A DNA stretch of 58,157 nt, counting the filler, from Hydrolagus affinis (Eukaryota), in NCBI GenBank assembly GCA_012026655.1. It is 3 parts of 3 records of this genome, joined end to end, with 100 filler letters (N's around TTAATTAATTAA, not from the genome) between each part and the next. Parts side by side here need not be neighbours in the genome. Positions count along the whole stretch, not along the records: positions 1 to 27,950 come from JAAILG010008597.1; 2 more parts are not named here. One strand, given 5' to 3'. The notes under the pieces are model-generated. The model saw only the letters and a program-made list of their open reading frames with translations. It ran no database searches and was not told where the DNA came from. The position numbers and the translations under genes were made by a program. This document shows, piece after piece, positions 2,639-27,029 of the stretch. How positions within the stretch are numbered: the stretch's first letter is position 1; each line of letters starts with the position of its first letter.

Positions 2639-4969
2639 GTCCGTGGTTCAGAGATGAGTTACATGTAATTTGCAAAGAACAATATGGTTTTTAATTGCAA
2701 CTGTAATCAAACCTCAAATTGGCAGCAAAGAGGAGAGTTAAATAAATCCATATTATCCTGTTTTAGTTTTCCGCGTTCTTGCATCAATTCTACTTTATCA
2801 TAAGAACTTAATGACATCAGAAATGGTAGCCAAAAAAAGACCAAGCTCCATTTGGTTCACCTTTCACCTTTATAGTGGTCACATGCACATAAGTCACAAA
2901 ATATTTATGCACTATATCCCATAATGATCTTCCTAAAAGAAAACTTTCCAACCTGTTTTTGAAAGAATCAATACTTCACGCTTCAACTGTCTTTCTAGGG
3001 AACCTGTTCCACAGCTTCAATGTTTGCTCTGTGAAACAGTGTTTGTATAGATTTATTCTGAATTTACAAACCCCCACTTCAATCGCAAGCCTTGGCTCTG
3101 GTTTTATTATGTTGGACAAGTTGAAACAACCTGTCGAGTTCTATGTCATGGTGACCTGTAGTTCACTCGTTAGAGCACTTGCGTTGCAAATAAGAGACCT
3201 GGGTTCAATGGCCAGCATGGTGACATCTTGGGCAAATTTTCTTTGCCACACGCCTGATAATAATCTCTAAAAAAAAATTGTCATCTCAACCCAGGACTGT
3301 TCACGTGGACAAATTGGATTGGTGGATGAATATTATAAACTGAAATGAATACAAATGATTGAAAACAACAGTTATTGTTAAAATCAATGGATGGACAGTT
3401 TATTAGTGATGTTGTAGAAATATAGTTATATATTATGTGAAAGCATTTCCCCTGAGAATCTGTGCTCAATTTCAAATGTACCAGAGAGAATGACTCTTCT
3501 GACCCGAGCCGTGTAGAGTTGGCCACCATCGTGATCAAACTGATTCCATTGGACATCTACAACAACAACAAAATTACACTTGTGTAGTGCCTTTTACATC
3601 AGGAGGATATCCCAAGGTGTTGATCTACTATCATATCGAAAAGTCTATAAAATATCTCATAAACTATTTTGATTTTAAGAGCAGCGATTGTTATTATAAA
3701 GGAGAAGAAATAGGAGATTTTCTCCAACAAGGTATCAGAAAACGGAATGGATTGATGAATGAATAGTATTTTATTCGTAAACATGTATCAGTCAAAAAGT
3801 CCAATTACTAATTTCAAACTTAATTGCAGGTGGCACGCGCAGGACTATTGCACGTTAGGCAGGTTACCAAATCACAAAACAACTTGAAGAATAGATATGT
3901 AGAATGTAATAATAAAATAAGAACATAGCCAGATTTCAGATATTCTTTGTTTCAAAGATTACAACAACAACTTTGATTTATATAGCGCCCTCCACGCCGA
4001 ACGGCGTCTCAGAGCGCTTAGATATATATTTATAGTGGATTGTTCTATCTATATATAACCCGACCTCAGCTCGTGTCTGAAATACGGACTGTTCAGCACT
4101 TAGGGTCGTCGTCCCAACATGTAGGGTACTATACAAATGTAATTTTGTTGTTGCTATTTTCGTTATATGCAGAGTTTCCAGCGAAAAACATTTAGCTTAT
4201 GACAGTAAATCGTTGGAACGTCTTTCTGATGTGAAAGGCATTGTACAAGTGTAATTTTGTTGTTGTTTTTGGTTTGGCGCAAACTAATGTAGATACAATT
4301 TTGAGTAACAAAGTGTTTCACAATAAAAGACAATATGACAAGTATACATTCTATCATAAAATCCTGTGTTGAATTTAGAAACTCTGTAGTTAGAAATGGC
4401 GGGTGTCCAGAGGCTAATGCCTGATTGCAGATAGGAATATACAACCATGTTGTATACAGAAATGCAAAATACTGCAGGTGTTGGATATCTGAAACAAAAA
4501 CTGAAATCGCTGGGGACACTCAGCTGATCAGGCAGCATCTATGGGGAAAGGAAAGTAAGTCAACATTTTAGGTTCATGACTCTTCCACACAACTGTCTGT
4601 GCATCGATCAGTTTGTCTCATATATTTACTGTAGTCTTGTAGCACTGATTAAAGCACTCGGCTTCAAAGCAAGAAACCTGTGTTCAATTCATGGCAGAGC
4701 AAAACACAGCAAATTTCCTTGCTCCACATGCCTGAACCTGGGACCATCTACCTGATGTGAATGGTAATCTCTATAATGTAATTTTGTTGTTGTTGTTGAT
4801 AATAATTTCTCTACCCCCAAAAAAATATTGGTCACTACAATCGATGACTGTTTATGGGACACTACTGTATGCAATTAGCAACCTCATTTCAGGTAATGCA
4901 GGCAATGCATACACTGGAGGTTGAACAGAATATAGCATTATGATCAGGAATGATGATTTGCCTTATTTG

Positions 4970-5232
4970 GAGTCCTATAGCTCAGTGGTTAGAGCACTCG
5001 GCTTATAAGCACGAAACCAAGCTCTGATTTCAGGCAGTGTGAAAATGTGAACAAGTTTTGTTACTGCACATGTCTGATAATAATCCCTTCTTTTTTTTTT
5101 GATAATTTGAATCCATGACTGTTTGCAGGACACACTGCTGTTCACAATCAGCTGCCGCATTTTGCTTATACATCTAAAGTCAATTCCCTTCAGAATATAT
5201 TCAGTGAAGCACTTTGAGATAGCTAGAAGACA
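4970..5232 (+). mobile_element. Same SINE family
   Basis: GAGTCCTATAGCTCAGTGGTTAGAGCACTCGG head plus body. Confidence 0.8.
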
Positions 5233-6116
5233 TGAAAGCAACAACAACAACATAATTACGCTTGTATAGCGCCTTTCCTGTCAGGAAGAAGTCCAAAAGT
5301 GCTGGACAGTTATTGTTTCAGACACAAGCTGGGGTCACGAATGGAAATGATGTGGGGAAAGGGGGATACTTGGGGTGACTGATGGGACCAATCAAACCTT
5401 TCTTGAGACAGTACTAGGGATTGGGCGAGGTGGAGGGACTGCAGGATGACGTTTCAGAGGTTGGGGGGGCAGAGTTGCTGAAGGTTCATCTGCCAATGGT
5501 GGTGTGGGTGGGTCGGAGGCCGTGGAGAATGCTGGAGGTTGATGAGCAGGGTGTGGGCTGGTTGGTAGGGGGTTAAGAGGTCACACAATTTGGGTGACGC
5601 AAGGCCGTGGAGGGCTTAGGATGGACGACCAGGTTCTTGAATTGGATTCTCTGGGTGATGGGGAGCTAAGTTGGGTGAGGATGGGGAAGGTGAGGTAATC
5701 AAGCTTGGAGCAGTAGAGGACAGGGGCCACAAAGTTCTGGATTACTTGCAACCTATGGAGGGAGGAATTAGAAAGGCTAACAAGGAGGGCATTGGCATAG
5801 TCAAACCAGGATGTGATGAAGGCACGAATGAGGGATTCAGCAGCCTGGGGGTGAGGTAGTGGCGGAGTCAGGCAATATTATGGTGGTGAGGGATCATGGC
5901 TTGGATGTGGGTGAGGAAAGATAATTGAGAATCGAATAAGGTACCTAGGTTCCTGACTGGCTTGGTGAGGTTGAGTGTGGAACCATGGAGGTTGATGATG
6001 CTAGTGCCTAATGCATGAAGGCACTGGTGCTAGCCAATCAGCAGGGCCTCGGTCTTGTTGACATTCAACAGTAGAAAGTTAGCTCTCATCCAGGACTTGA
6101 TATCCGCCAGGCAGCC
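5233..6116 (-). mobile_element. L2 LINE 3' portion (host of the nested copy; continues at 7879-8020)
   Basis: Minus strand DIKSWMRANFLLLNVNKTE at about 6045-6105; (CAA)n tail near 5235. Confidence 0.8.
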
Positions 6117-7868
6117 TCATCCTCCTGCCTCTCATCGCACACCACCACCATTGCATCCCCCTCACCCTCCCTGTCATCAGCTCCTATCACGACTCCCTTC
6201 CTACATTCCTTCTCCTCCGTCTCTCCTTCGTTCCTCTCATGCACTATCACCCCAATGAAGCCCACCACCTGCTGCCCCGAACCCCTTCCTACCAACTTAC
6301 TGGTCATCCAGCTCCCCCTTCCCTGCCCACTGCTGCCTGACATCATCAACCAGTCCCTCTCCACAGGATTAGTTCATGCCCGCCTCAAAACTGCCGCCTT
6401 CACCCTACTCCTCAAAAAATCTTCCCTTGATCCCTCAAACCCTAGCCACTACCACCCTATTTCAAACCTGCCCTACCTTGCCAAAGCACTTGAATGCGTT
6501 GTTGCCAACCAACTCCACACCCATCTCTCTTCCCACTCCCTTTTTGAACCCAGCCAATCCGGTTTACGCCCTGTCCTCAGTACAGAAACTGCACTTGTGA
6601 AAATCACAAACGACATACTCTCTATCTGTGACCAGGGCTCCCTCTGCCTCCTTATCCTCATGGACCTGTCCGCTGGGTTCGACACAGTCAACCACACCAT
6701 CCTCCTTCACTGCCTGTCCTCCGTCATCCACCTCAGTGGGACCGCACTCGCCTGGTTCGAGTCCCACCTCACAAACTGCCAGCAGTACATCTCAATAAAC
6801 GGCTCTCCTTCTGCTCTCATCCAGTTACCTGCAGGGTACCCCAGGGATCCATCCTTGGCCCCCTCCTCTTCCTTATCTATATATTCCCTCTTGGGGACGT
6901 CATCCACAGACATGGGGTACACTTCCACATGTATGTGGATGACACCCAAATACCTCAAAGTTAGGTATTTCTCCACCTCACTTTTGTGATTCCCCCAGTC
7001 CCCTGATGTTCTGTCAGCCTGCCTGTCAGACATGAGGAGCTGGATGAGAACAAACTTCCTGCAGCTGAATGCTGACAAGACGGAAGCCATACTCTTTGGC
7101 TCTCGTCAATGTCTTCAATCGCACGGCTCTCACCTCCTCCACCTTCCCGGTCTGCCCCTAAAACTCTCCGAACCCGTGCGCAACCTAGGAGTCAGGTTCG
7201 ACCCCCAACTGCCTTCCTCCCCCATATCTGGTCCCTCACCAGCATTGCTTTTTTCCACCTCCGACGGATCGCCCATCTCCGGCAATATCTCTCCCAGAAA
7301 CCCTGGTCCATGCCTTTGTCACTTCTCGCATTGGACTAATCCAATGCCCTCCTGCCAGTCTCCCCTCCACAACAATCCATCAAATCCAACTCATTCAAAA
7401 CTCTTCCACCTGCATTCTCACTTCGCTCATCCAAACTTTGCTCCCCCATCACCCCAGTCCTTCCCAGACTTCACTGGCTCCCTATCCCAGAGAGGATCGA
7501 CTTCAAGATCCTCACCCTTGTTTTCCCAACCCTCCACTCCTCTACACCCCCCTACCTCTCCAACCTCTTCTCTCCTCAAACCAGCACCTGTTTCCTTCGC
7601 TCCACCGGGTCTGGCTTCCTGCTTGTTCCCCGAATCCTCCGATCTACCATCGGCAGCCGTGCCTTCAGCCACTACGCCCCGAGGCTCTGGAACTCCCTTC
7701 CTCACTCCCTTCATCTCAGCCCCTCTCTTCCCAGTTTCAGGACTCAGCTAAAGACCTTTTTCTGTGACCGCGACCCCTGGCTCGGTCCCGGGATCCGTTA
7801 TTGTGAAGCGCTCTGAGATGCCGTCTGATGTGGAGGGCACTATATAAATCAAAATTGTTGTTGTTGTT
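6117..7868 (+). mobile_element. L2-clade LINE, 5'-truncated, with RT remnant; nested inside another L2
   Basis: ORFs give [40 protein letters not shown] and NFLQLNADKTE with frameshifts; 3' end TGTGAAGCGCTCTGAGATG..(GTT)n. Confidence 0.9.
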
Positions 7869-7878
7869 GATATTTTTG

Positions 7879-8020
7879 TTGATGTTTGACAAGCAGTCTT
7901 TCAGGACAGTAGTGGTCCTGAAATCGAGGGTACGGGCAGAAAGATAGAGTTGGGTGTCCTCCACATATATGTGGAAGTTCACTCCATGTTTACAGATGAT
8001 GTTACTGATATCAACTGAAC
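7879..8020 (-). mobile_element. L2 RT fragment continuing 5233-6116
   Basis: NFHIYVEDTQLYLS (degenerate YADD) followed by DCLSNI, immediately upstream in RT order of DIKSWM. Confidence 0.75.
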
Positions 8021-9482: not shown

Positions 9483-9807
9483 ATTATTATAATAATAACA
9501 ATAAAATAATCCTTGCATTTGATATAGCGCTTTTCACGTCTTCTATACGTCGCAAAGCACTTCACAGAATATACTGTAAAGTGAATTGACTATATATTTG
9601 TGGGTGAAACACGGCAGGCAATTGTGACCAGTGGTGTCCCACAAACAGTCGTCGATTGAAATGACCAATTATATATATTTTTGAGGGATTATTATTAGGC
9701 ATGCGGAGTAAGGAAACTTGGCCAAGGTTTCTTCCTGAATTTCCTGGATTCGAACACAGGTCTCGCGTTTGTATGGTGAGCGTTCCTACTAACGAGCTAC
9801 AGGACTC
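9483..9807 (-). mobile_element. Same SINE family, full length
   Basis: Reverse complement of the 15343 copy. Confidence 0.85.
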
Positions 9808-11596
9808 CACTTGTACTAAAGTATTAAACTGGAATGAACAATGACGGACAACGATCAATGTACATTGAACTATCAACCAAGGAACGAAGCACTGAAATAC
9901 TATTATCCTCAGATGCCAGGGTTTTAACAGCCCCATCAGTGGCAGCATGATTGAGGATATACAAAGATTTACAAAGGGGACATTGGATGGTGGAGAGTAT
10001 TCACCATTTGTACCATTGAATTTGAGTCCCTGGATATCAATCTTGAGACGTTGTATGAAACATACTCAACACATCAATTTGATCACATTTTAGGCAACTG
10101 TCCAGAGTGCACGTCCATCTAAACAACACTATGGTGATCCTGGTTAAGTCTTCAAGAAATTCAAGTTAATTTAACCCAGTAAAAAAATACATAAGCAAGT
10201 CAATTAAAACCTTTTAGAAAAAAACAAACTTTGATTTGCTTCTATCAAATGGAACGTTGCATCATAACTTATAGAAACAGATGAAAAAAATTGAATAAGG
10301 CACATGGGCTTTTACAGACAAAGGGGTCTGTGGTATGAGATTGTATCTGTTCAGTATATGTATATATAGATATCTATATTTACATAACAGATGTACACAT
10401 GTACGTGTGAAATTGCTACACCGATTAACCCAAGCAACATCAGTTGACGTGTTGCAAAAACTGCCTGTGAATGGAGCCAATCATGTTCTATCTTTAACCC
10501 AGCACAGCAGAGACATGGGTAGAAAATAAATGTTGCTTCATTTTAGCTACTTTTACACATACTTGCAGAACGCCCACACAATAACGTTTCATTGTGGCAG
10601 ATGAATTCCATCGCATTGTCTTAGATAGTTGTGAAGGTAAATTATATCACTTTAGTTTTAATTTGATATTCTGTAAGTTATTGTCATCAGATGAGGTAAC
10701 ATAATTTAAGTGAAGCAAAGCATTACCCTCACTGCACACACTGAACTGCTGAACATTTACTTCCAGCTAGATGTAATGCACATCTGGTATTCAACATTTC
10801 AGATTCAGCTTTGAGGAAGCTAGCCTGAACTCAGGATAATTAACGTTTATATCTAACAGATTGAGAATTGCTTTTAGAATTGATGACATGCCCTACATCC
10901 AAAATATTGTGAGCAAAATACCATATATTTGTTGTAGAAATTGGTTACAGAGACAATAGAGTCAAGATTGCCGGAGTCAACTAAAGAGATTGCTTCTCGG
11001 CCAATCATTGAATTGATGTCTAACCTTTAAAATGTTTGGATTTCCCAGAAAGAGAGTGAAGCTTTACTAAACATTAAAGAATCATCATAATCTATGTCTG
11101 AAGCCCAGTAGTAAGTACTTGGCTAAGATATATATGAAACAAAGTATAAGAATTCCATAGTATGCTTTTTGATTTAATTTATCCGATTCTATGGAAAATG
11201 TAGATTGACTAAATCAAACCCAACACATTGTGTTCCATAACTGCTGTTTATTGAATGTTGACTAAACCGCTTCACAGTGTTACAAACTATTATGAACTGG
11301 TTTCTCGTTTGTATTGGTATAATTTGTTCTTGTGATATAATACGTTCATTGCTTTTCTAAATAATTATAGTTTATAGCACAGAGACATTATCAGATTAGT
11401 ATTAAACAATTCAGAAAATGAAATTGGATCGACTTGATAAATGATAGGTTATGCAAATGGAATCAAGATTTGTGTCTTTCTACACTGTCAAACCGGTGAT
11501 ACAATAACACACCAGCATTGATATAAACACTGTCACTAGTCTTCATCAGAAGCAATCTGTGACTGATATACAGTAGTAATTGTCTATTATGTGACA

Positions 11597-14500
11597 TTAT
11601 GCGGTTTCTGCCTCCATGGCAGCTTTGTAGTTTCCGATATTTACCTCCGCATACTCTGAATTCTTGTCGTGGCGTTTAGCTTTTCCTGTTTTTTTGGAGC
11701 GAGGTAAATCCAGATCAGCGTAGGTCAGCTTGTCAGCTGCTGCTCCTTGCTTGGTCTGAAAACAACAATGTTTGGGATTGTCTTTTTGTTACTTACATAG
11801 ACAGGTGTACATAGAATGGAACTGGAAACTGACCAGCCTGTGTTTATACTTCACATGAGCTCCTTCCTTAACTATTTCATTCTGTAACTCTCTAATCGCT
11901 TCTCCTCATGTATGCAACAATTTTATGTTACATTATTTCAAACCCTTTATCCAACGGCCAATTGATTAATACATTTCAAACTGCGATATCTAGCTGCAGA
12001 TACATGGGCTGTAGATCCCAACGATGAGCTGACAGTGGCTTCCATGGGTTGGTGAAAATCAATGAATGCTGAAGTTCCTGATTGCTCTAAGGGAAATTGA
12101 CATTTGAAGATGTCTGAATGAGTTGTGATCCTCGTTAAATTATTTGCTGAATTGTTGATTCATATACAAAGATACGATCTTAGAATTTTACAGGCCAGAG
12201 GGCCAGTTTGCCCATTGTACACGGACTGTCAATTTGAAAGAATAATAAATATCGAGTCCCATTTACCTGCTTTTACCCAATGCTCCTTAAAGTTGATCCA
12301 TTTTACATATCCCCATGATTTTTACATAAATAAATTATATTGGTTAAATGCTTGAAGCCTGCAAAGTTTCCACAACTGAATTCAACATCAACGTGGTAGT
12401 ATGTTCGGGAGTGAAAGAGGAGGCTGGGAACAAAATCGGAGACAAACTATCACAGTCAATGAATCCGATTGAACAAACTCGTTCAATATTTTCTACGTGT
12501 TCTTTACCTGGGCGTATACTGTCCTCTCTTCTTGATGTTTAGGTCTTGGAGTTTTATTGGAACTTCTCAAATTCAATGTTACATAAGCCACGTTGTCACC
12601 CGCTGCTCTCTCCCCCATCTATAAACAAAGTATAGAGTAAAATGATTGTTCAGTTTACTTCCTAGGTTTGTGCTCTTTAAACATGGTATTGAATAAGTAG
12701 GGATTTGAGGCGAAACAATGGCTACTGTCAAATTCAAACATATAAAAGTTAAATACATATAATGTTCATTGAGTAGATCGATTGCTCTCTGGAGGTAGTG
12801 AAATTTAGGTTTCCAATTGAGGTTTTGCTTACCCGATCTTCAAGATTGCCCAATGGAGTCACGTTTTCTTTTGATCCTAAATATGAATACAATTTAGTTA
12901 ATGAACTATTTACTAAATTTCAACGTTAACACTAAAATAATGTAATTGTTCTATATTTTGGGATGGAATGTACAATCTCCATGTCACTCAGACATTTTGA
13001 AATTCTTAACATTGTGAATTCTTTCCCTTCAAAATTTTAACTCTAAATCTGGGCTACCCCTAAACACTATTCCTTGAATTTTTTCATTTTTCTCATGAGA
13101 AACCTGGTTGTTTCCTGCAATCTGGGCCTTGGTCTTTTGGCTACGACTAATAAAAACACGTTTTGGATATCACAATTTGAATGTAATTGAATTCTACTAC
13201 TTCTAAACACACACTTGGTGGTTGTCCCTGCATGTGTTTGACGCCATTCATCACTACAGCTACTTACAAATGCATATAATTTATTGTAGCTTAAGACGGT
13301 TGCAATGTATTAAGTCAGATTTAAGACATTGTGAGTTCAAAAATGAGAAATTCTGTGATACTAAAGTCCACCACCTGAAATTGTTACAGTAATAAATCTG
13401 TTGCAATAATTACACATAATTGTTATTGCATAACCACAGCATCACGGAACTCCACCTTCAAATGTTAAGTAACGAGCAACTTGCATTTTCTCTTTATTAA
13501 CCATTGGTGCATTCTTAGGTTTTATATCAACGTGTAATTTTCACAATTAATTACAATGAAATCGGAATTTTCTTACCGTTTTTCATTTTCATTTGGCATC
13601 GCTTCCCAATTATGATCAAAAGCACCAGAAATGCTAACACACCCGCAGCACATCCACCCCATAGTGAATAACGGGTTTTATTTCCACTCCCTGGAGAAAT
13701 AGTATACACTAAGGTGAGACTGTACATTGTGTAGGAGAAAGATCTGAAAAGTTATGCAGATCATTTATGAATTATATATTGTAATGATTTCATGTAAATT
13801 TTAAGACAGTAACCAGATTAACTATTATGACTAATCTTAATCTGTGTAATTATTAAGCAAGAATTAAGATTACTAGTAGACCTTCACTGAAAACAGTTTG
13901 ATATTTATGTAGCATAACACAGGTACAACTAATAACATCAACATTCACTTATTTTTATTATTTCTCTTGATATTATGACATAGGCGAGAGCGATACATAG
14001 AATACCAAAGCGGAACATTGTTTATCAGAGGAACCCTCACAAATACAATGCAGAAATTGTACAGTGAGATATCTGTACATAGTGGCATCTTATTGCAGTG
14101 ATGAAAGTTGCACACTTGGTATTAATATTTGATGAAGAAGTGTCTTGAACTGTCCCGAGATTTTGAAAATGATGTGGGTTTTGGGTGCCACCATTTATCG
14201 GTTAGTTTTAAGAAAATGCTTGAAGATTCAAATGGTATAATGTGGTTTAATCACCATCATGCACAACTCCCTTCTCACCATCTCAACACATTTGCCTCCT
14301 ATGCACCATGGCATTGCTTCAGGTCTCATGGGAGAGCAAGTAACATTCCATCCCTCAAGTCACAGAGCCGAACATTGGCTGTCCCTCAGGGCTCTAACCT
14401 CTACCTCTCCTCTTCACTATCTATATGTTCCCACTTGGCAACATCATCCATAGACACTTAATGCGCATCCACATGTATAAAGATGTATAGAAATGAAACC

Positions 14501-17016
14501 CAACTCTCCCATCTTCCTCCACAAACTGAATCCAACTTCATCCCGATAAGTGTGAAGCTTCAGGTCCTTCATGAGCTCCGACTTTCTTCACCTGAATAAT
14601 AATAATCTTTGCATTTTTCTATCGAATTCAATGATTAATGGTATTATTATCTCATGATTTTCATCTTAATCGCTTCAGATGAATCACTCAAATGTAGTTT
14701 TGTTGTTGGTGTTGTTTACGAATCAATGCAACTAAACATCCCTATGAGATTTGAATTAACAATAGTTGACTTTTTAAAATTCGCTTAGAATCTTACCTGT
14801 GTTAGATTGTGGGATGGTGTAGCTGGCAATAGCTGAATTCTGGAGGCTGATGTGAGACACCAGACAGGTATAAACAGATGCTATCTGGACGGATTGTTTG
14901 TCTTCAATAGAGCTAGAGACCTTATAGAGTTCCCATGAGTTCTGCTCTTCTATGGTTATTGTCTCTTCCATCTTTATTCCTGATGTTGGTGTAATTTGTT
15001 TTTCATCTTTATACCATGTGAGGGTGAAATCCTTTGGGTAAAATGCGGTAGTTTCACACACAAGAATCCGATGCTTAGTTGAACTTCTAGATAAAACTCT
15101 CAGTGGAGTTGGAGGAACTGTAGAATATATAATGGGGGGAAATCGTATTAAATTTCATCAATGAGTGGAACAGACTTTTTTTGGATTAATTCCTTTGCAA
15201 GATCATGATTCCTGAGTGCAAATGGAGGTTCTCTAGATACACAAATATCCCTCTCACAGCAGGAGAAGCCTTTCTCTTGCTTCAACTACTTTGTGGTTTA
15301 ACAATTAATGTTGATTCATAATCTTTGTCTTACATAGTGGAACTTCTTTAGCTCAGTGGTTAGAGCACTCGCCTTACAAGCATGAGACCTGTGTTCGAAT
15401 CCAGGCAGATCAGGGCAAAACCTTGGGCATGTTTCCTTACTCCACATGCCTAATAATAATCCCTAAAAAAAAACACCCAATAATAAAATTGGTCATTTTA
15501 ATCCACGACTGTTTGTGGGACACTGCTATGTACAATTGGCTGCCGCGTTTCGCCCACAAATATACAGTCAATTCACTTTACAGTATATTCTGTGAAGCGA
15601 TTTGAGACGTCTAGAAGATGTGAAAAGCGCTAAATCAAATGCAAGGATTATTATTATTATTATTACCAAGTGTAAGAATTAGCAGTTGGAATTCATTTCT
15701 GCAAACTCTCGGAACAGAGAAGATATAGAATTCTTGACAGGTGTGTGCATACTGTGTTCTTCTGGCTCAATTGGCAGCATTCTTGCTTCTGAGTTAGAAG
15801 GATACATGTTCAAACTCCGCGTTGGGACATATAATTCACATAGACTATGTTCAAACACCCAATGCAATGCTGTTCTTAGGTTGATAAATTAAACCTGGTT
15901 TAGTTCTGCCAGTTTTGTTGAACGTTAAAGATCTCATGTGAATAAATTGGCAGCTGTGTTCGCTTAGAAAGTACTCAGTCTCATGACTTCACAACATATC
16001 ATGTGCAATGCTTTGGGAGATGCTGTATCAAATGAATGGATTGTATTTTTTTTAGTTTTGAGAGGATTTGATCAGGTAAAGAGTGAAACACTGAATTTCT
16101 AACATGAGTCCGTAAGTTAAAATCTTTACCATAAAATGTTGGAGGTTGTATTCTGGTTTTACTGAAATTAGATTAAATAGTTTCTGAAGTAGAAGCTGTA
16201 ACACCCTCTCAAAGGAATTTTAAAGTCACGGTTGATTTGTATTCTACATGGATCAATTCTATAACTTTTGTAAAATTAGAAATATTTCATTAATTTGTCA
16301 TGAGTTGTATTATTTCATGTTTCATTTGTGCAGATTTTGAAATTAAAATGTTATTTCCACTTAATTTACTCTAATACCTTTATGTGAAATTTATTAATAA
16401 ACAATGTAAATCACTATATAGAATTCACCGTATTATTACTTTCAATGTAATTATCAAATATTTTCGCCCTTCATCCACACTCACCCTGCACAGTTAAGCG
16501 TGATCCAGGTCCTGTTCCAATTATTGATCCCTGAACCATCACTGAGCAGCGATAGACTCCAGAGTCCTGTAAACTCACATTCAGCTTGAGGAAGCCGCTT
16601 CCTTTGCCTTTCACAGCAAATGTTTTCCTGCTGTCCGCATGTGTATCCAAGTAGCCATCCACACCCTCTTTCTCCCACTGGAACTGCAGTACTGAATCGC
16701 CTTGATAGAAGGGTAACACACAGATGAAAGAGACATTTGTCCCTCTGACTGCAGCCACACGTTCGGGGATTTGAATCATTTTGACAAATGAAGCACCAGG
16801 AACTGTCAGAAGTTAAAGTCAAACACAGATATATCAGGTGATGTGCCGTGAAGAAAACCAAATGTGTAAAAGGGAAAAAAAACGCAGGTTTATATGATAA
16901 AGGCACATGGACACAAGCTTGCACATGTGTCATAGAATAAATAAGTTATTGCATAAACATATACCTGTTGAAATAAAATATAAGGCACATAGATAGAGAA
17001 AGACAACACTCCCCAT
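11597..17016 (-). CDS. Receptor gene 2: complete 372-aa V-C1-TM receptor with ITIM-bearing tail (inhibitory, SIRPalpha/NKp30-like)
   Basis: Seven GT-AG exons with consistent phases, total 1119 nt: 16965-17016 leader (MGSVVFLYLCALYFIST), 16485-16802 V (..YRCSVMVQGSIIGTGPGSRLTVQ), 14797-15117 C1, 13577-13690 TM (LWGGCAAGVLAFLVLLIIIGKRC), 12833-12876 (phase 1 to 0), 12508-12618 (..VAYVTL..TVYAQ), 11597-11755 (..LTYADL..SEYAEV..TA*). Confidence 0.88.
15343..15665 (+). mobile_element. tRNA(Ala-like)-derived SINE with L2-type tail, full length
   Basis: TAGCTCAGTGGTTAGAGC (A box), GTTCGAATCC (B box), conserved body and tail GTGAAAAGCGCT..ATGCAAGG(ATT)n. Many other copies are present in the window. 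Confidence 0.85.
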
Positions 17017-17135: not shown

Positions 17136-17879
17136 TTGCAACACGCTTGCAGTAAAATTATGAAAATAATAATTATTCATAGTAATAGAGAAACGTCAAT
17201 CAAATATATAAACATAAAACTAGAGTTCAGCTTCATTATTGAGTCAGTGGTGCTTTCTCAAACTGGAAATATTGTTTCATGCGTCAATTCCGCTTGGAGT
17301 CAATAGTGTCAGAACAACAACAACAACTTTGATTTATATAGCGCCCTCCACGCTGGACAGCGTCTCAGAGCGCTTTACAAGGCAATCTGGTGGAATATTT
17401 CTGATGATAGTTCTCTCTGTCCCCTATTGATAGAAATTAACCTTTCCCTCTAAAGCACACACCGTCCCTCTAAACTACCAAATGATCATCCCATTTTAAC
17501 CTTACCCTTCTTATGCAAAATGCTGGCCACTCAACTTTGCTCACATCTTTTTCCCCACCGAGTCTTAGAGTTCCAGTTTCTACCCAAACACGAGACAGCA
17601 CAGTCAAAGTAACAATATTCTCAGTCTTTCTTTCAAAGTCCAATCATAATCTTTGTGTGTTCCCTCATATCCAAAGCCCTGGTCACTCAACTTTATTCCC
17701 ACTTTTTATTCCACTCGGTGCCAGAACCAGTAACATTAATTTTCTGCCCACACCATAGAAAGCCTAATCACATTACCCAATGATGTACTGCCTCTCTCTG
17801 TCTCTCTCTCTCTCTGTCTTTCTCTCTGCAACCACAATGCCTCTGCCGTCTTGTTCTCCTAGATGTTGTGCTACTTTCA

Positions 17880-20009: not shown

Positions 20010-20375
20010 GAGTCTCTAGCTCTGTAGTTAGAGCATTTGCATTACAATCAAGAGTCCTGAGTTCAATTTCAGACAGGACAAAACGTTGAGCAAATTTCCT
20101 TACTCCACATGCCTAATAACAGTTCCTCAAAAACTAATAAATCGGTCATTTTAATCCTTGACTGTTTGTAGGACGTTGTTGTGCGCAATTGGCTGTTGCC
20201 ATTCGCCCAATATATACAACAACAACAACAACAAAATTGCATTTCTAGAGTGCCTTTCACGACGGGTGGACATCGATCAGTTCACTTTGCAGTGCAATTT
20301 ATGAAGCACTTTGAGACATCTGGAACATTTAGTGAAAAGCACTACATCAAATGCAAGTATTATTATTATTATTTT
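20010..20375 (+). mobile_element. Same SINE family
   Basis: Head, body and (ATT)n tail. Confidence 0.8.
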
Positions 20376-22912
20376 CATTATTACATTGCTCTGGTGAGAC
20401 AACATCTTGTGTAATTTATAGCAATATAGCCACTGTGACATAACGGGGCTTCCCTGTTCCAATGGGCAATGCAGAGGAAAACAGTGAGGATGAGTCACTG
20501 CGTTAGAGGAATATGCTTTGAGAGGTGTTTAATTGTTTATGGGATTGACAATCTAACCCCAGATCAACAGTTTAGATTAGAACAAAACAGCAGAATAAGA
20601 GGACATAGGTTTTGAGTTGCAAGGGCAATATCAGGATCGATACCCGGTTTTTCTTTACAGCAAGTAAAATAAAAATACCTGGGATAGGTTGGGAGGAAGA
20701 TAAGTTGAGGCCACCTCATGTAATGCACAGATTGAGGCTGTGATGGGCAGTTGGTGGGGTGGATGTTCAGAAAGGATGAGGGTCAGACAGGCAAAAGGGC
20801 GTTCCAGAATGAATACAAAATTAAGATGTATTTTATTTTTATGTTTTGCGTTAAACAGACACAAAATACACGCAGCTACAACACCACCTCGTGGAGTATC
20901 AGTGCCAACATGAAATATTGCGCCTAGTTTTTACACCTATTTTGCTACAATACATTACAATACATTGATGAAAACGTTAATAACCCGTGCTCTACACAGC
21001 CGGAGACTCTTGTGATAGATTTATCCTTTGATATTTACCCATAAGCAGAACGATTGGGGTTTTAACTCTTATTTTGTTTCATGTCGGGTATAATATCTGT
21101 AGATACACAAAATGCTCAATGGCCACGTTTCAACCGTTTCACTGCATGTGACGAATTCCACCACATTTTACTGCCTCCCCGCCCCTCCCCCTCTCTCTGT
21201 TGATATTTAAAATCCTCTCCTCCCAATATACCCCAGTTCTGACTAAAGGTCGTGGACAAGGTCAGCAGCAGAAATGAAGCAAATGTATATTTTGGAGGGT
21301 TAGATGTTATGTTCTAGACGTTCTGTACAAAGGTCCCCCTCCCATTAATGAATCTGATCAGTTTTGACCCCGATATCAAGCTGACCTCCAACAATACCTC
21401 ACAAGTGTTTCACCCCATTAAACATTTCTGTGCCATCTGACTTCCTGCCTCAGAGGGTTCAGCGAATTGACTTCGTTTTGAGAGTGTAATTCGTAAGTAC
21501 ATATACCGGTAGTCATTATAGCTGACGTCAAACGTCAGACTCAGACACACTACATTGGGATACAGTGGGCAGTGTGGGGCTGCAGGGCTGGTGGAAGGCA
21601 AACCGTGTCTTCTTTTACTTAACACATTCTTATATTCTTAAGTTGGATGTGTTTAATATATTTGCACATGTTCTCGCTATTGCTTTTCCCAAGAGCATTG
21701 ACCGATCATTATTGACAAAAGTATCCCACAGACCTCGATTGAACATTTTATTTATTGCAATTCGAAATGATGAATCGAAGCTGTTATGTTCAAATGTAAT
21801 GCACGATACAATCAACTTCATTTGAGATTTTACCGTATGGTATTACAGATATCACACAACAATAGAAATTATTTATAAAACACTAGAGCGGTGGGGGTGG
21901 ATAATGTAATATGTTTAATTGTAGGTTTCTTGGGGCAAAACTGACCAAACTGGTGTGTAATGTTTTGACCTGGGTCTGGGAAGAAAGTCTGGGAAACCAC
22001 CAACAGCAAAATTACGTTGGTTTTGTGCCTTTCATGTAGGAACCATGTCCCAAGATAACGGGATGTATAACTGCTGATATATAGCGAGTGAAACCAAAAC
22101 AAGTTGGGTGATATTTCAGTTATATTGCGACTCCTGTGTGGTGTAAGTCAAATGCATGAAATCCATTTGATACAGTCCTGTAGACTGGTTCATAATTTAT
22201 AATCTTCCTTTTGTTCCAGTCATTGCTTTTCCTCCAGCATAATTCAATCTCCTGGGATCATTTCTTCCTCACTTCACCTGTAACCAAACAAGCGGTGCCA
22301 GTGTGAATATCACCAATCCTTTGATTCTATGGTTAAGTGTCCTGATTGCTGCTTTCCACCCAAAACAACATTGAAGTTTCTATCTGAAATGTTCACAACG
22401 AGACTGGAAACGGAATATATTTTAGTTTAATTGCAAACAGCGACTAAAGATACTCAGACAACATTGATATCCCGCCGATCACTTGGAGATGGAAGCCGAG
22501 CCATCACATATTGACTGTCTGATTTGATTTGTCTCTAACATGGTATTAATGTATTCTAACACAAAATATTTTCAACTTATCTTGAAGAATGTCCTGTCTC
22601 ATGTAAGTAGAGCGTGTGGATGACGACACAAACATTAATATACAATATGAAAACAAAATAACAGATACGGAAGTTATTACACAGACATATTGTTCAATGT
22701 TGTTCCAGACGCCTGGAGGTTTGGAGGAGATATCTTTATATCCACTGATTATTAGAGAATCCTCCAATAAACAAATCATCATGTCCACAATCTAAACAGT
22801 CTGGTCCCGGTTACCGGTGGTTTCCTGTTCATTGATAATTTTATGGGCTACGATATCAATACAATAATTGTCAATGAAACCACAATATTATTTTGAAACA
22901 CATAATGCCTCC

Positions 22913-25900
22913 TTACCTTTCAAGTTGTGAGATTTTAACATGGTCAACAATGAAGATGGTCAACACTATCACTACCAAGAAACAGAATATAAACCGTAAA
23001 ATCATCATGTTCTCCGACATTCCACCATAATATCCATTCCTCCCAGAAGCTAGAAAACAAAAATCGGAATGTAGCATGTTTACGGGAGAATCAAAGGAAT
23101 AATTGGGCTGCAGACTTTCTCAATTAATTTCTATTGGAAGCTACCCATGAGATGGATGAATATATTCAGAGACTTGTCCTGAAACATCAAGGCAAAGACT
23201 GTTTATTAGTGATGTTATAGAGACACAGTTACAGATTGTGTAGGAGCAGTGCCCTTGAGACTGTGTTGCTGAGGTTCAACTATTACCAGAGTTTGTGACT
23301 GTTCCGACCAGAGTCATGGATAGTTAGGCAGCATCTCAATCAAAACTGATTCCATTGGACATCTACCATCATATAGAAAAGGCTATAAAACATCTCATCA
23401 ACTATTTTTTATTTTAAGTCCAGCAATTGTTGCTATAAAGGAGAAGAAGCAAAACATTTGTTCCAATGAGGCGTCAGAAAATGAAATAGATTCATGAATT
23501 AATACAATTGATGTTTTATTCGTGGATATGTATCAGTCAAAAAGTCCAAATACTGATTTCTCACCCAATTGCAGGAGGAGAGCTCAGGCTATTGCATTTT
23601 AGGCAGGTTACCAAATAACAAAATAAGTATATTTGTGAAGGAGAGATATTGAAATTTATTTAAAAAAAGAAGATACTCAGGTTTAAGATATCCTACGTTT
23701 CAAAGATTAAATAATTATAGTTTAAAAAGAGTTGGACGCGTCTTCTACTTTCGCTTCACCTACAATATTGTGCAATCCAGTGAAGCAACTAGCCTCAGAT
23801 GCAAGTCCAAGTGGGATATTTCAAAGCGAGTTGGATAATAGTGTTAAGGTGAATGGAAAGTGTCGGAGATACTGATTCAAATCCTGCCATCATTCCAGAG
23901 CAACAATAACCTACACTTATATAGCGTGCTTTCAGCAGGAGAGAGTCCTGAAGGAGACATTACTATGAGATTTGAATTAACAACAGTTGATTATTTAAAA
24001 TTTGTTTAGAATCTTACCTGCGTCAGGTTTTGGGATAGTGTAGGTGGCAATAGCTGAAGTCTTGAGGGTGGCGTGAGACACCAGACAGGTATAAACTGAA
24101 GTTTTCTGGACAGACTGTGTGTCTTCAATAGAGCTAGAGACCTTATAGAGTTCCCCCGATTTCTGCTTTTCACTGGTTACTGTCTCTTCCACCTTTATTC
24201 CTGATGTTCGTGTAATTTGAATCCCATCTTTATGCCATGTGAGGGTGAAATACTTTGGGTAAAATGCCGTAGTTTCACACACAAGATTTACTTGCTCAGT
24301 TGAATTAGAGAAAATCCTGATTGGAGTTGGGGGAACTGTAGAACAGATAATAGAGGAAAATCGTATTAGTTTTGACGAATCGGCGGGACAAGCTTTATTT
24401 TGATTCATTTATTTGCAGAATCCTGATTCCTGAGTGCAAATGGAGGTTAGTTTAGATACACATATTCCTCTCATCGCAGCAGAGCGTTCCTCCTGCTTTG
24501 ATTAATTTGTGGTTTTATCATTAATACTCCTTCATATTGTTGTCTTAAATATTATACTAAATGTAATGATTAGCAGGCGGAATTGATCACTGCTAACTAT
24601 CAAACACAGGATATAGAGTATTCCTGATGGCTGTGCACACGATGTTATTCTAGCTCAATTGGTAACTTTCTCGATTCTGAGTTAGAAGGGTTTGGGTTCA
24701 AGCTCCGTGTGCAGATTTGGAATTCATATAGTCTACGTTGAATCATCTGTTGCAATGCTGTTCTTAAATGCAAATTTAAACCTGGTTTAGTTATGACCGT
24801 TATTTGGCTAAAACGTTAATGATCTCATGGCCAAATTCAAATAGAGTATTGGTGGCCTGCCCAACAATTAATTTTTATTAAATGGTCTTCCACCCCATGA
24901 CTGTTCTGCAACATTTTTCTGCATAAATTGATGGCTGTGGTTCCTCATCGTGTACTCAGTCTCATGACTTTACAAAACATCATGTGCGGTGCTTTGGTAT
25001 GTTTCCAAGTTGCAGTATCAAATGAAAGGATTGTATTATTGAACTCTTGGGAGGTTTCCATTAGGTAAAGAGGGAAACAGTGAGTCTACAACAAGAGGCT
25101 AAAATTAAGATCATTATCATAAAATAAAGGATAGTGAATTTTGATGTTGCTGAGAGGCTGTTTGGTCGTAAACAAAATACTGGGTGAAGCACTTTCCTTA
25201 ACAGCTGTTGAAAGGAATTTTCATGTCATGATTTCTTTGTCTTCTATAAGTATTTTGGATGATATACTCGTATGAATAATATGGATAAAATCTGTAACCT
25301 TTGTAACATTGTCATAGAGCGGATCGACTTCAAGATACTCAATCTTGTGTTTAAATCTCTCCACTCTTCTGCACCTTCTCTAACTCTCCGACATGGTCTC
25401 TCCTCACTGCAGTCTACTGTGTCCAGTCTCCTGCTTATCCCTTAATCCTCCGCTCAACCATTTGTGGCTCTGCTTTTAGTCACTAAGGGCTGAAACATTC
25501 GAACTACTATCCTTAACCCCTTCTCTTCACCCCCTCCTTTTCCATATTCAGGTCGTGCCTGAAGATCTTTCTCTTCTACCATGCTTACGGTTACCGTCCC
25601 CCTTGGCCTCGGGCTCCGCCATTCTGAAGCACTCTGACATACCGCCTGGTGTGGAGGCCACGATATAAATGCAAATTGTTGTTGTTATAAAATTATTCGT
25701 GAAGTTGTAGTGAGTTACAGTATTTTGTGTTTTAGTTGTGTGCAGTTTGAAATCAAACACATGATTCTCACATAACAAAAGCCGCTGAAACCTTGGTCCA
25801 TGCCTTTGTCACCTCTCGGCTGGACTATTGCAACTCTCCGGTCTCCCCGCCACCACAATCCACAAAATCCAGCTTATCCAAAACTCTGCCACCCGCATAC

Positions 25901-27029
25901 TCACCCGTTCTAAGCTTCGCTCCCCCATTACCCCAGTCCTTGCCAGACTTCACTGGCTCCCTATCCCAGAGAGGATCGACTTCAAGATCCTCACCCTTGT
26001 TTTCAAATCCCTCCACTCCTCTGCACCCCCCTATCTCTCTGATCTCCTCTCTCCCCAAACTAGCACCTGCTGCCTTCACTCCTCTGGGTCTGGCCTCCTC
26101 CATGTTGCCCGAGTCCTCCAGTCCACCCTCGGTGGCCGTATCTTCAGGCACTATGTCTCGAGACTCTGGAATTCCCTTCCTCACTCCCTTTGCCTTGGCC
26201 CCCTCTCTTCCCAGTTTCAGGTCACAGACCTTTCTTTTCGACCGCGCTTTTGGTCACCTTTCTGCCCCTGCCCCTGGCTCGGTCCCGGGATCCGCTATTG
26301 TGAAGCACTCTGAGATGCCGTCCGGCATGGAGGGCGCTATATAAATCAAAGTTGTTGTTATAACATACTCTAAAAACTAATATGTAACGGTTATTAATGC
26401 ACAAATAATCTAAAGATCCAAATAACATTCACTGCATCTATTACATTTTATATAATTTTCACATAGTTTTTTGCTCTTCATCCACACTCACCCTGCACAA
26501 TTAATTGAGATCCAGGTCCTGTTCCAATTACTGATCCCTGATGGGTCACTTTGCAGCGATAGACCCCAGAGTCCTGGAAACTCACATTCAGGAGCTGGAA
26601 GTAGCTGCTTCCTTTCTCTTTCACACCAAATATTTTCCTGCTATCCACAATTGTATCTAAATAGCCGTCCTCACCCTCCTTCTTCCACCGCACCTCCACT
26701 CCCGAACCGTTTTGAGAGGAGGGAAAGATACAGATGAAATTGATGTTTGTCCCTTTGATGGCAGCTAAACGTTCTGGGAGTTGAGACACTTTCCCTGGAG
26801 AATCACCAGCAACTGTCAGAAAATAACGTCAAACAATGATTTCTCAGAAAGTATGCTATGGGGAAAAGCAAAGGAGTAAAACAAAAAGAACTAGGTATAC
26901 TGTATATGATAAATGGCACATGGAAAGAAGCTTACACACATTTCATAGAACAACTGACATGTAAAATAGACATATACCTGTTGAAATAAAACTCAAGACA
27001 GACAGATACAGAAAAACAACGCTCCCCAT
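22913..27029 (-). CDS. Receptor gene 3: 275-aa V-C1-TM receptor with Arg in the TM and a minimal tail (activating type), close paralogue of gene 2
   Basis: Exons 26978-27029 leader (MGSVVFLYLSVLSFIST), 26492-26812 V (..YRCKVTHQGSVIGTGPGSQLIVQ), 24018-24335 C1, 22913-23049 TM/stop (ASGRNGYYGGMSENMMILRFIFCFLVVIVLTIFIVDHVKISQLER*). Junctions are phase 1. The 3' end is less certain because the stop overlaps a possible donor site. Confidence 0.82.
25317..26358 (+). mobile_element. Two L2 3' fragments (25317-25687 and 25779-26358) in the V-C1 intron of gene 3, absent from gene 2
   Basis: SRLDYCNS, LARLHWLPIPERIDFKILTL and L2 tails ending (GTT)n; flanks align with 16250-16400. Confidence 0.85.

Follow-up and report, generated by a model that had tools for sequence, protein, structure and literature searches.

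What kind of receptor carries the four-tyrosine cytoplasmic tail encoded at positions 11597–12618 of a 58,157-nucleotide stretch of the Hydrolagus affinis genome (assembly GCA_012026655.1), and is this tail related to that of mammalian SIRPalpha? The stretch (hereafter, the window; length given with filler included) consists of three parts joined end to end, and positions 1–27,950 are derived from record JAAILG010008597.1. An earlier reading made from the sequence alone (the sequence-only reading) had described a SIRPalpha-like tail built from a duplicated exon and joined to an NKp30-like ectodomain, and had proposed either a deep SIRP homologue with only one C1 domain or a mosaic of an NKp30-type V domain and a SIRP-type tail. 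The window is AT-rich vertebrate DNA (35–45% GC), and its minus strand contains three tandem genes of the immunoglobulin (Ig) superfamily, labelled A, B, and C. The tail exons form the 3' end of the middle gene, gene B (17016–11597, minus strand), which is an intact seven-exon gene with a product of 372 amino acids (aa). Gene B probably encodes a type I membrane inhibitory receptor that belongs to a tandem paired cluster of a chondrichthyan receptor family, with a tail composed of exon modules that had been duplicated before chimaeras and elasmobranchs diverged.

The model of gene B was assembled from splice sites and phases and comprises the following exons (TM, transmembrane; ITIM, immunoreceptor tyrosine-based inhibitory motif; a slash marks the exon boundary).

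16965–17016, minus strand: exon 1, start codon and signal peptide MGSVVFLYLCALYFIST, with the phase-1 donor CAG/gtatat.
16485–16802, minus strand: exon 2, V-set (VJ-type) Ig domain in a single exon, with the G strand IGTGPGSRLTV.
14797–15117, minus strand: exon 3, the sole C1-set Ig domain.
13577–13690, minus strand: exon 4, stalk, uncharged TM helix WGGCAAGVLAFLVLLIIIG, and stop-transfer sequence KRCQMKMKN; phase 1 in and phase 1 out.
12833–12876, minus strand: exon 5, 44-nucleotide (nt) cytoplasmic exon GSKENVTPLGNLEDR, leading from phase 1 to phase 0.
12508–12618, minus strand: exon 6, 111 nt, 37 aa, phase 0-0 (tttatag/ATG GGG...GCC CAG/gtaaag); tail module of type A, with the ITIM VAYVTL and the non-canonical TVYAQ(T).
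11597–11755, minus strand: exon 7, 159 nt including the stop codon TAA, 52 aa, phase-0 start (ttttcag/ACC AAG...GCA TAA); tail module of type B (ITIMs LTYADL and SEYAEV), followed by 15 read-through codons.

All seven exons have canonical ag/gt sites and compatible phases without an internal stop, and the reading frame keeps the signal peptide, the Ig cysteines, and every motif tyrosine. Exon 1 provides an ATG and a hydrophobic leader and is ~75% conserved with the upstream paralog, and the Pfam assignments of exons 2 and 3 are V-set (1.2e-6) and C1-set (4.8e-7), respectively. The short exon 5 was the top-scoring candidate in a splice-site scan; the same junctions are found in the RefSeq model XP_042196354 of Callorhinchus milii, and a 44-nt exon lies at the same place in a C. 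milii paralog. The exon 6 and exon 7 positions and their phase-0 starts, as given in the sequence-only reading, were confirmed on the minus strand. Its statement that the protein has only one C1 domain also holds, with a single C1 exon present and no second C1 exon detected between the V and TM exons by tblastn or through collinearity with C. milii. Three other arrangements were rejected: a direct splice from the TM exon to exon 6 is terminated by a phase-1 stop, use of an acceptor farther upstream for the TM exon likewise yields a stop, and an assignment of exons 6 and 7 to another gene conflicts with the C. milii RefSeq models. Because these models join the same exons, the tail exons were assigned to gene B.

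The proposal that the two tail exons arose by duplication was borne out. The exon 6 and exon 7 peptides align without gaps over 33 residues with a BLOSUM62 local score of 60 (shuffled controls, 19.9±4.0; 0 of 5000 reached 60), and the DNA sequences, compared in register, are identical at 65 of 111 positions (58.6%; codon shuffles, 31.5±4.5, with none of 5000 as high). In both exons the tyrosines occupy residues 12 and 35, and thus the spacing is exactly 23 in each, rather than the 22–23 residues first given for these pairs. A codon-by-codon comparison located one further feature.

11639–11644, minus strand: former donor in exon 7, GTAAAT at codon 38, in register with the exon-6 donor GTAAAG and coding as Val-Asn.

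Exon 7 continues for 15 codons past this site to the stop codon. The match in register and the GTAAAT counterpart of GTAAAG therefore identify exon 7 as a module copy whose donor has turned into coding sequence.

In the spliced product, the second tyrosine motif of exon 6 reads TVYAQT; the valine that could have completed the motif is intronic. Because of the Thr at position +3, TVYAQT is neither a canonical ITIM nor a canonical immunoreceptor tyrosine-based switch motif (ITSM). The tail of gene B thus contains four tyrosines in two ITIM-type pairs, VAYVTL/TVYAQT and LTYADL/SEYAEV, of which three motifs are canonical and one is conserved but non-canonical. This second type A tyrosine (QEERTVYAQ/TKQG; 12508–12618 in the window) is among the best-kept stretches of the tail from chimaera to sharks, despite fitting neither the ITIM nor the ITSM consensus.

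Gene B is assigned as the ortholog of C. milii LOC103185896 on the basis of shared exon junctions and a collinear locus, the two holocephalan-like genomes being fairly distant from each other. The junctions TM/exon 5/exon 6/exon 7 are the same in XP_042196354 (annotated as 'uncharacterized protein'), and positions 17172–9968 of the window are collinear with the LOC103185896 locus at 70–78% nucleotide identity, introns included, with partial matches in the neighbouring genes. Amino acid identities between gene B and the C. milii ortholog are 64% in V, 60% in C1, 70% in exon 4, and 75% in the tail (89% in exon 6 and 70% in exon 7). At the nucleotide level, exons 6 and 7 share 93.5 and 87% identity, respectively, and are better conserved than the surrounding non-coding DNA, with ~78% identity over the 2.5-kb block that contains both exons and the intervening intron. 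Both module types, their motifs, and the C-terminal extension are shared by the ortholog, whereas LTYADL and SEYAEV of gene B are replaced by LTYAAL and SEYSEV in C. milii. The C1 exon is present in C. milii DNA (L002 11143–11454, MU249845.1), where it is open over the aligned 104 codons, and has been left out of XP_042196354. The missing C1 reflects either a C1-skipping isoform or an incomplete model; a C1-skipping form has been described for mouse short SIRPalpha (PMC12324903).

An exhaustive hidden Markov model (HMM) search that used the V domains of genes A, B, and C as queries matched 848 proteins. All single-V relatives for which a source was looked up come from cartilaginous fish, and, as far as the searches show, the multigene family is restricted to this group. 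Genera represented in the family include Callorhinchus, Heptranchias, Heterodontus, Scyliorhinus, Chiloscyllium, Mustelus, Carcharodon, Cetorhinus, Pristis, Mobula, Hypanus, Hemitrygon, and Narcine, and all members seen are of the V-C1 or V-only type. With V and C1 domains 35–65% identical to those of other members, the same TM types, and 37-aa ITIM modules in phase-0 exons, gene B is a new member (the ortholog from another species) of this known, annotated chondrichthyan V-C1 receptor family. The names given to the family by the RefSeq pipeline are inconsistent, i.e. 'tyrosine-protein phosphatase non-receptor type substrate 1-like' (SIRPalpha-like), 'SIRP beta-1-like', 'NCR3-like', 'NCR3 ligand 1-like', 'tapasin-related protein-like', 'CD276 homolog', and 'Ig lambda-like'. 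The first of these is carried by two C. milii paralogs on MU249845.1 (XP_007902825.2 and XP_007902824.2), which consist of V-C1-TM followed by two or three modules. A third class of tail is also found in the family, in which V-C1-TM is followed by a Lys-rich tail without tyrosine motifs (e.g. P0116, which is C. milii LOC103185897, P0064, and P0075), and some members with such tails are named 'NCR3 ligand 1-like'. Judging by its gene number, LOC103185897 probably adjoins the ortholog of gene B, and receptor-like and ligand-like family members may be interleaved in one cluster. The 10-kb flanks of the C. milii loci contain paralogs only.

Chimaeras, sharks, and rays all have the tail module, and the number of copies per paralog ranges from one to at least four. 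Consecutive ITIM-like tyrosines in family proteins are 23 residues apart in 32 cases and 36–37 residues apart in 25 cases, and the module period of 36–37 aa corresponds to a single 111-nt exon. The C. milii paralog that encodes XP_007902824.2 has a phase-0 exon of its own for each of its three modules (102 nt, 117 nt, and the terminal exon), with a 44-nt exon ahead of them, as in gene B. The consensus sequences of the two types are ...VAYVTLxL..KTPRPKHQEERTVYAQ for type A and TKQGAAxNKLTYAALDL..SKKTxKPK...KNTEYAEL for type B. In a tree of 38 modules (38 columns, with many open forks), the modules were grouped by type and not by species: a group of 17 rows (support 93/90) contains all 14 modules labelled type A, with type A rows from the window, Callorhinchus, Heptranchias, Heterodontus, and Mobula. 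Exon 6 is sister to the C. milii type A module (98/93), and exon 7 falls in a starred group of three rows with the C. milii type B module (98/94). Because the modules group by type rather than by species, the duplication of a phase-0 exon is placed before the chimaera/elasmobranch split; it is an ancient trait of the whole chondrichthyan family and not an event of this gene.

Upstream of gene B, the window contains a second family member, gene C, for which the following exons were identified.

~27029–26978, minus strand: leader of gene C.
26812–26492, minus strand: V domain of gene C, 61% identical to that of gene B.
24335–24018, minus strand: C1 domain of gene C, 70% identical to that of gene B.
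22917–23049, minus strand: TM exon of gene C, RFIFCFLVVIVLTIFIVDH, with an Arg in the helix and an Asp-His pair; phase 1 in and phase 2 out.

The 3' part of gene C is unrelated to that of gene B. The TM segment shares 48% identity over 27 aa with that of Heterodontus XP_067905015, and the R...(D/E)H pattern also occurs in short-tailed members from Heterodontus, Carcharodon, and Scyliorhinus. No ITIM exon was detected for gene C in the window, and the last exon required by its phase-2 donor was not found there. With their similar ectodomains, and with an Arg-containing TM segment and no detected ITIM exon in gene C, genes B and C look like a paired inhibitory/activating set, in which gene C is likely the activating-type partner of gene B.

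By analogy with known receptors, gene B most likely acts as an ITIM-bearing inhibitory receptor. Binding of a ligand by the V domain would bring the receptor beside activating receptors, where Src-family kinases would phosphorylate VAYVTL, LTYADL, SEYAEV, and perhaps the conserved non-canonical TVYAQT. The tyrosine pairs, 23 residues apart, would then dock the tandem SH2 domains of SHP-1/SHP-2, and activation would be damped. Gene C, which combines a similar ectodomain with an Arg TM segment, would send the opposite signal via an adaptor with an immunoreceptor tyrosine-based activation motif.

How far does the likeness to SIRPalpha go? The second tyrosine pair of SIRPalpha reads LTYADLD, and the sequence-only reading had drawn attention to this match. 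The form of the SIRPalpha-type tail, i.e. two tyrosine pairs with ITIM-type motifs ~23–24 residues apart, is indeed present in gene B. The exact match to LTYADLD, however, rests on a substitution unique to gene B: among 44 family modules LTYADL occurs in gene B alone, and the family consensus is LTYAAL. The comparison was made with the human SIRPalpha fragment DITYADLNLPKGKKPAPQAAEPNNHTEYASIQTS printed in PMC5589908 and the C-terminal sequence PKPEPSFSEYASVQVPRK from PMC13131406. The tyrosines of human SIRPalpha module 1 are 24 residues apart (PMC5589908). When scored on a type B module HMM built without gene B, this module reached 19.4 bits, compared with 4.6–12.7 bits for seven reptile ITIM/ITSM tails. 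A score of 19.4 bits was attained by 11 of 3000 shuffles in which the two 6-residue cores were kept fixed (p≈0.004), whereas it was attained by 195 of 3000 when ITYADLNL and TEYASI were preserved (p≈0.065), and thus the linker adds little to the SIRPalpha likeness. No SIRP was returned by a search with the family tail region over 5.8 billion proteins, which yielded chondrichthyan proteins only and is limited by shared words and E≤10. Family members appear to share almost no 5-mers with SIRPalpha. The tail of gene B had no PDB match, and an ESM Atlas search with exon 7 found just generic Tyr-motif adaptor clusters below the trust threshold. In mouse Sirpa, exons 6–8 of the eight exons are reported to be cytoplasmic (PMC12324903). 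The likeness resides mostly in the extended ITIM (xTYAxL[DN]L), xEYAxx, and the spacing between them. It is genuine in architecture and motifs, but may amount to no more than a shared extended motif.

The V exon was modelled with AlphaFold2 (AF2; predicted local distance difference test score, 89.6) and compared with the Swiss-Prot AFDB by Foldseek. NCR3 (NKp30) of four mammals (rat, macaques, human, and chimpanzee) was found at ranks 4–16 with TM-scores of 0.74–0.77 and E values of ~3e-7. These matches had the highest identities (23–24%), but CD79B, TCR beta V, and Ig kappa V ranked in between, and phmmer matched NKp30 chains to the V domain of gene B over the F-G strands only (E 0.04–0.1). 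Some C1-less family isoforms are named NCR3-like by RefSeq. The label 'NKp30-like V' is therefore defensible, if weakly supported: as the sequence-only reading had suggested, NKp30-like traits are present in the V domain. It appears to resemble NKp30 and antigen-receptor V domains alike. A V-set domain with a J-like G strand, as in SIRPs, is also present in gene B, but this is not specific to SIRPs: the match to NCR3, CD79B, TCR, and Ig V domains is equally good or better.

No SIRP was found among the top 30 Foldseek matches of either the V or the C1 model, and those of the C1 exon were C1-set domains in general (MHC II beta2, Ig delta, and TCR beta C). With phmmer against the PDB, SIRPalpha d2 was the best single-stretch match of the C1 exon (28 bits, E 2.2e-5), with B7-H6, TAPBPR, and MHC II beta close behind and IgM Cmu2 also matched. 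A whole-protein search with a C. milii member had one match outside the cartilaginous fish, a SIRPbeta1-like protein of hyena (E 5.7e-11), in a word-indexed search that is biased by shared 5-mers; the alignment runs collinearly from the V F-G strands (GPGSRLTV vs GPGTQVTV) through the V-C1 junction into C1. In hhalign comparisons, the family profiles matched SIRP d1, d2, and d3 with 96–97% probability (V, 96%), a level expected between any V or C1 domains. Searches of the PDB with the family profiles were swamped by multi-domain Ig proteins and give no ranking of NKp30 against SIRP. Gene B has neither the V-C1-C1 layout of SIRPs, having one C1 only, nor the ITIM-less Arg TM arrangement of NKp30, having an uncharged TM segment and ITIMs.

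These observations bear on the two origins proposed by the sequence-only reading. Under deep SIRP homology, the family would represent SIRPalpha/beta in chondrichthyans, with homologous tails, and the tetrapod SIRPs would have gained a second C1. The matching order of VJ-type V, C1, TM, and two ITIM pairs, the close tyrosine spacing, the module 1 score, the SIRPbeta1-like and SIRPalpha d2 matches, and the occurrence of C1-skipping isoforms and alpha/beta-type pairing in both families are in line with such a relationship. The single C1, the lack of significant similarity in the linker, the tail search that returned chondrichthyan proteins only, the restriction of LTYADL to gene B, the Foldseek lists that contain NCR3 (for V) but no SIRP, and the bias of the word-indexed search argue against it, and a similar ITIM-ITSM spacing is common in SHP-binding receptors in general; we consider deep SIRP homology unlikely. 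A mosaic, in which an NKp30-type V or V-C1 gene took a SIRP-type tail from another gene by exon shuffling, would explain why the V domain leans to NKp30, why C1-less isoforms are named NCR3-like, and why the tail resembles SIRPalpha, and phase-0 module exons are easily shuffled. However, the same V-C1-TM-tail set occurs in chimaeras, sharks, and rays, where the order of module types is also shared, neither a donor gene nor a breakpoint can be seen, and the locus is collinear with C. milii throughout. In addition, SIRP-likeness is seen not only in the tail but also in the F-G strands of V, across the V-C1 junction, and in C1, which argues against a mosaic without establishing orthology to SIRP. 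Shuffling, if any, must have preceded the chondrichthyan radiation, which would leave it indistinguishable from common descent. A mosaic origin is thus very improbable.

Gene B as a functional inhibitory receptor has also to be weighed against an unexpressed or decaying copy in a fast-turnover receptor cluster, and several points weigh against the functional reading. There was no transcript support for gene B in the sequencing runs compared: run X1, the sole run containing the locus, has contigs that are contiguous across introns, as DNA would be, with ~2.5% divergence, and the three RNA runs, single-cell libraries from a different organism, cover only a short interspersed repeat (SINE) at 15340–15670. 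The ratio of non-synonymous to synonymous rates (dN/dS) relative to the C. milii ortholog is 1.33 for tail exons 5–7, where changes are very few (dS 0.09), and 0.76 for V plus C1; because these ratios are too noisy with so few changes, they do not demonstrate constraint. TVYAQT provides no canonical SH2-phosphatase site, and ligand, kinase, and phosphatase binding are carried over from known ITIM receptors. The family is probably the published shark 'NCR3 family', which was reportedly described by Flajnik and colleagues in 2012 and Kinlein and colleagues in 2021. Nurse shark NCR3 sequences (MT914154–MT914161) are cited in PMC12227049, and MHC linkage of shark NCR3 has been stated in the literature (PMC12227049; PMC10751288). 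The omission of the C1 exon from the C. milii RefSeq model could be added in favour of decay. Against decay stand the open frame over seven exons, with its canonical splice sites, signal peptide, Ig cysteines, and motif tyrosines, and the better conservation of the tail exons than of the adjacent non-coding DNA, and a decaying copy is hardly credible.

The remainder of the window contains a third paralog, gene A, and repeats, with no MHC markers in reach.

~2031–1744, minus strand: V domain of gene A, 43% identical to that of gene B.
350–38, minus strand: C1 domain of gene A, ~45% identical to that of gene B.

The 3' part of gene A (TM and tail) lies beyond the window start, and its partial matches in C. 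milii (69–73% identity, 92–236 nt) fall in the gene downstream of LOC103185896. SINE copies are located at 15340–15670, 9490–9830, 20010–20380, 4968–5237, and 3149–3277 and also occur in the C. milii loci; the sequencing runs contain the element in huge numbers (summed contig word depth of ~1.6e7 in run X1). Two GC-rich stretches (5000–8000 and 25700–26400; 48–53% GC) have strong negative GC skew and long open reading frames (ORFs) on both strands, including a 244-aa ORF at 6255–6989, and have peptide stretches in common, e.g. PDFTGSLSQRGSTSRSSPLFS. Both resemble retrotransposon copies that were inserted between and within the receptor genes.

These results document a putative inhibitory/activating pair with antigen-receptor-like V-C1 ectodomains in a chimaera-like fish. 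The inhibitory tails of the family are built from a countable exon module of ~37 aa in phase 0, with one ITIM-type tyrosine pair per exon, and the difference in module copy number between paralogs provides a concrete route by which inhibitory strength could be tuned through exon gain or loss. They also expose the inconsistent RefSeq naming of the gene B family, which matters for annotation, and sharpen the question of whether SIRP, NKp30, and the gene B family descend from one VJ-C1 ancestor.

Compared with known tandem ITIM/ITSM receptors that recruit SHP-1/2, such as PECAM-1, PD-1, Siglecs, LAIR-1, and FCRL-like reptile proteins, gene B has the same combination of a hydrophobic-x-Y-x-x-hydrophobic motif and a second tyrosine motif 20–30 residues downstream; the conserved 37-aa module and its exon organization are absent from those receptors, and the seven reptile tails score lower on the module HMM. 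Mammalian NKp30 carries an Arg in its TM segment, a feature found here in activating-type family members such as gene C. NKp30/NCR3 shares with gene B a VJ-type V domain in a single exon and a doubled Gly motif in the G strand, but, unlike gene B, mammalian NKp30 is activating and has neither a C1 domain nor an ITIM tail. Mammalian SIRPalpha (SHPS-1/PTPNS1) shares with gene B a V domain with a J-like G strand followed by a C1-set domain, an uncharged TM segment, and a tail with two tyrosine pairs of the form xTYAxL(D/N)L...xEYAxx, 23–26 residues apart. It is also paired with SIRPbeta, whose ectodomain is similar and whose TM segment is charged, and a C1-less splice form exists, as in the family of gene B. 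SIRPalpha differs in having two C1 domains and four canonical motifs, compared with one C1 and three canonical motifs in gene B, in linkers that are not significantly alike, and in not being retrieved by database-scale tail searches. It is conceivable, although we give it only a small chance, that the 37-aa double-tyrosine module and the VJ-C1 ectodomain were inherited from a receptor of the ancestral gnathostome to which SIRPs and NKp30 both trace back; the SIRPalpha tail would then be the same exon pair kept for >400 million years, with a C1 domain added in SIRPs, and with C1 and tail lost in mammalian NKp30. If so, one VJ-C1 inhibitory prototype near the roots of the antigen receptors would link two major innate receptor systems.

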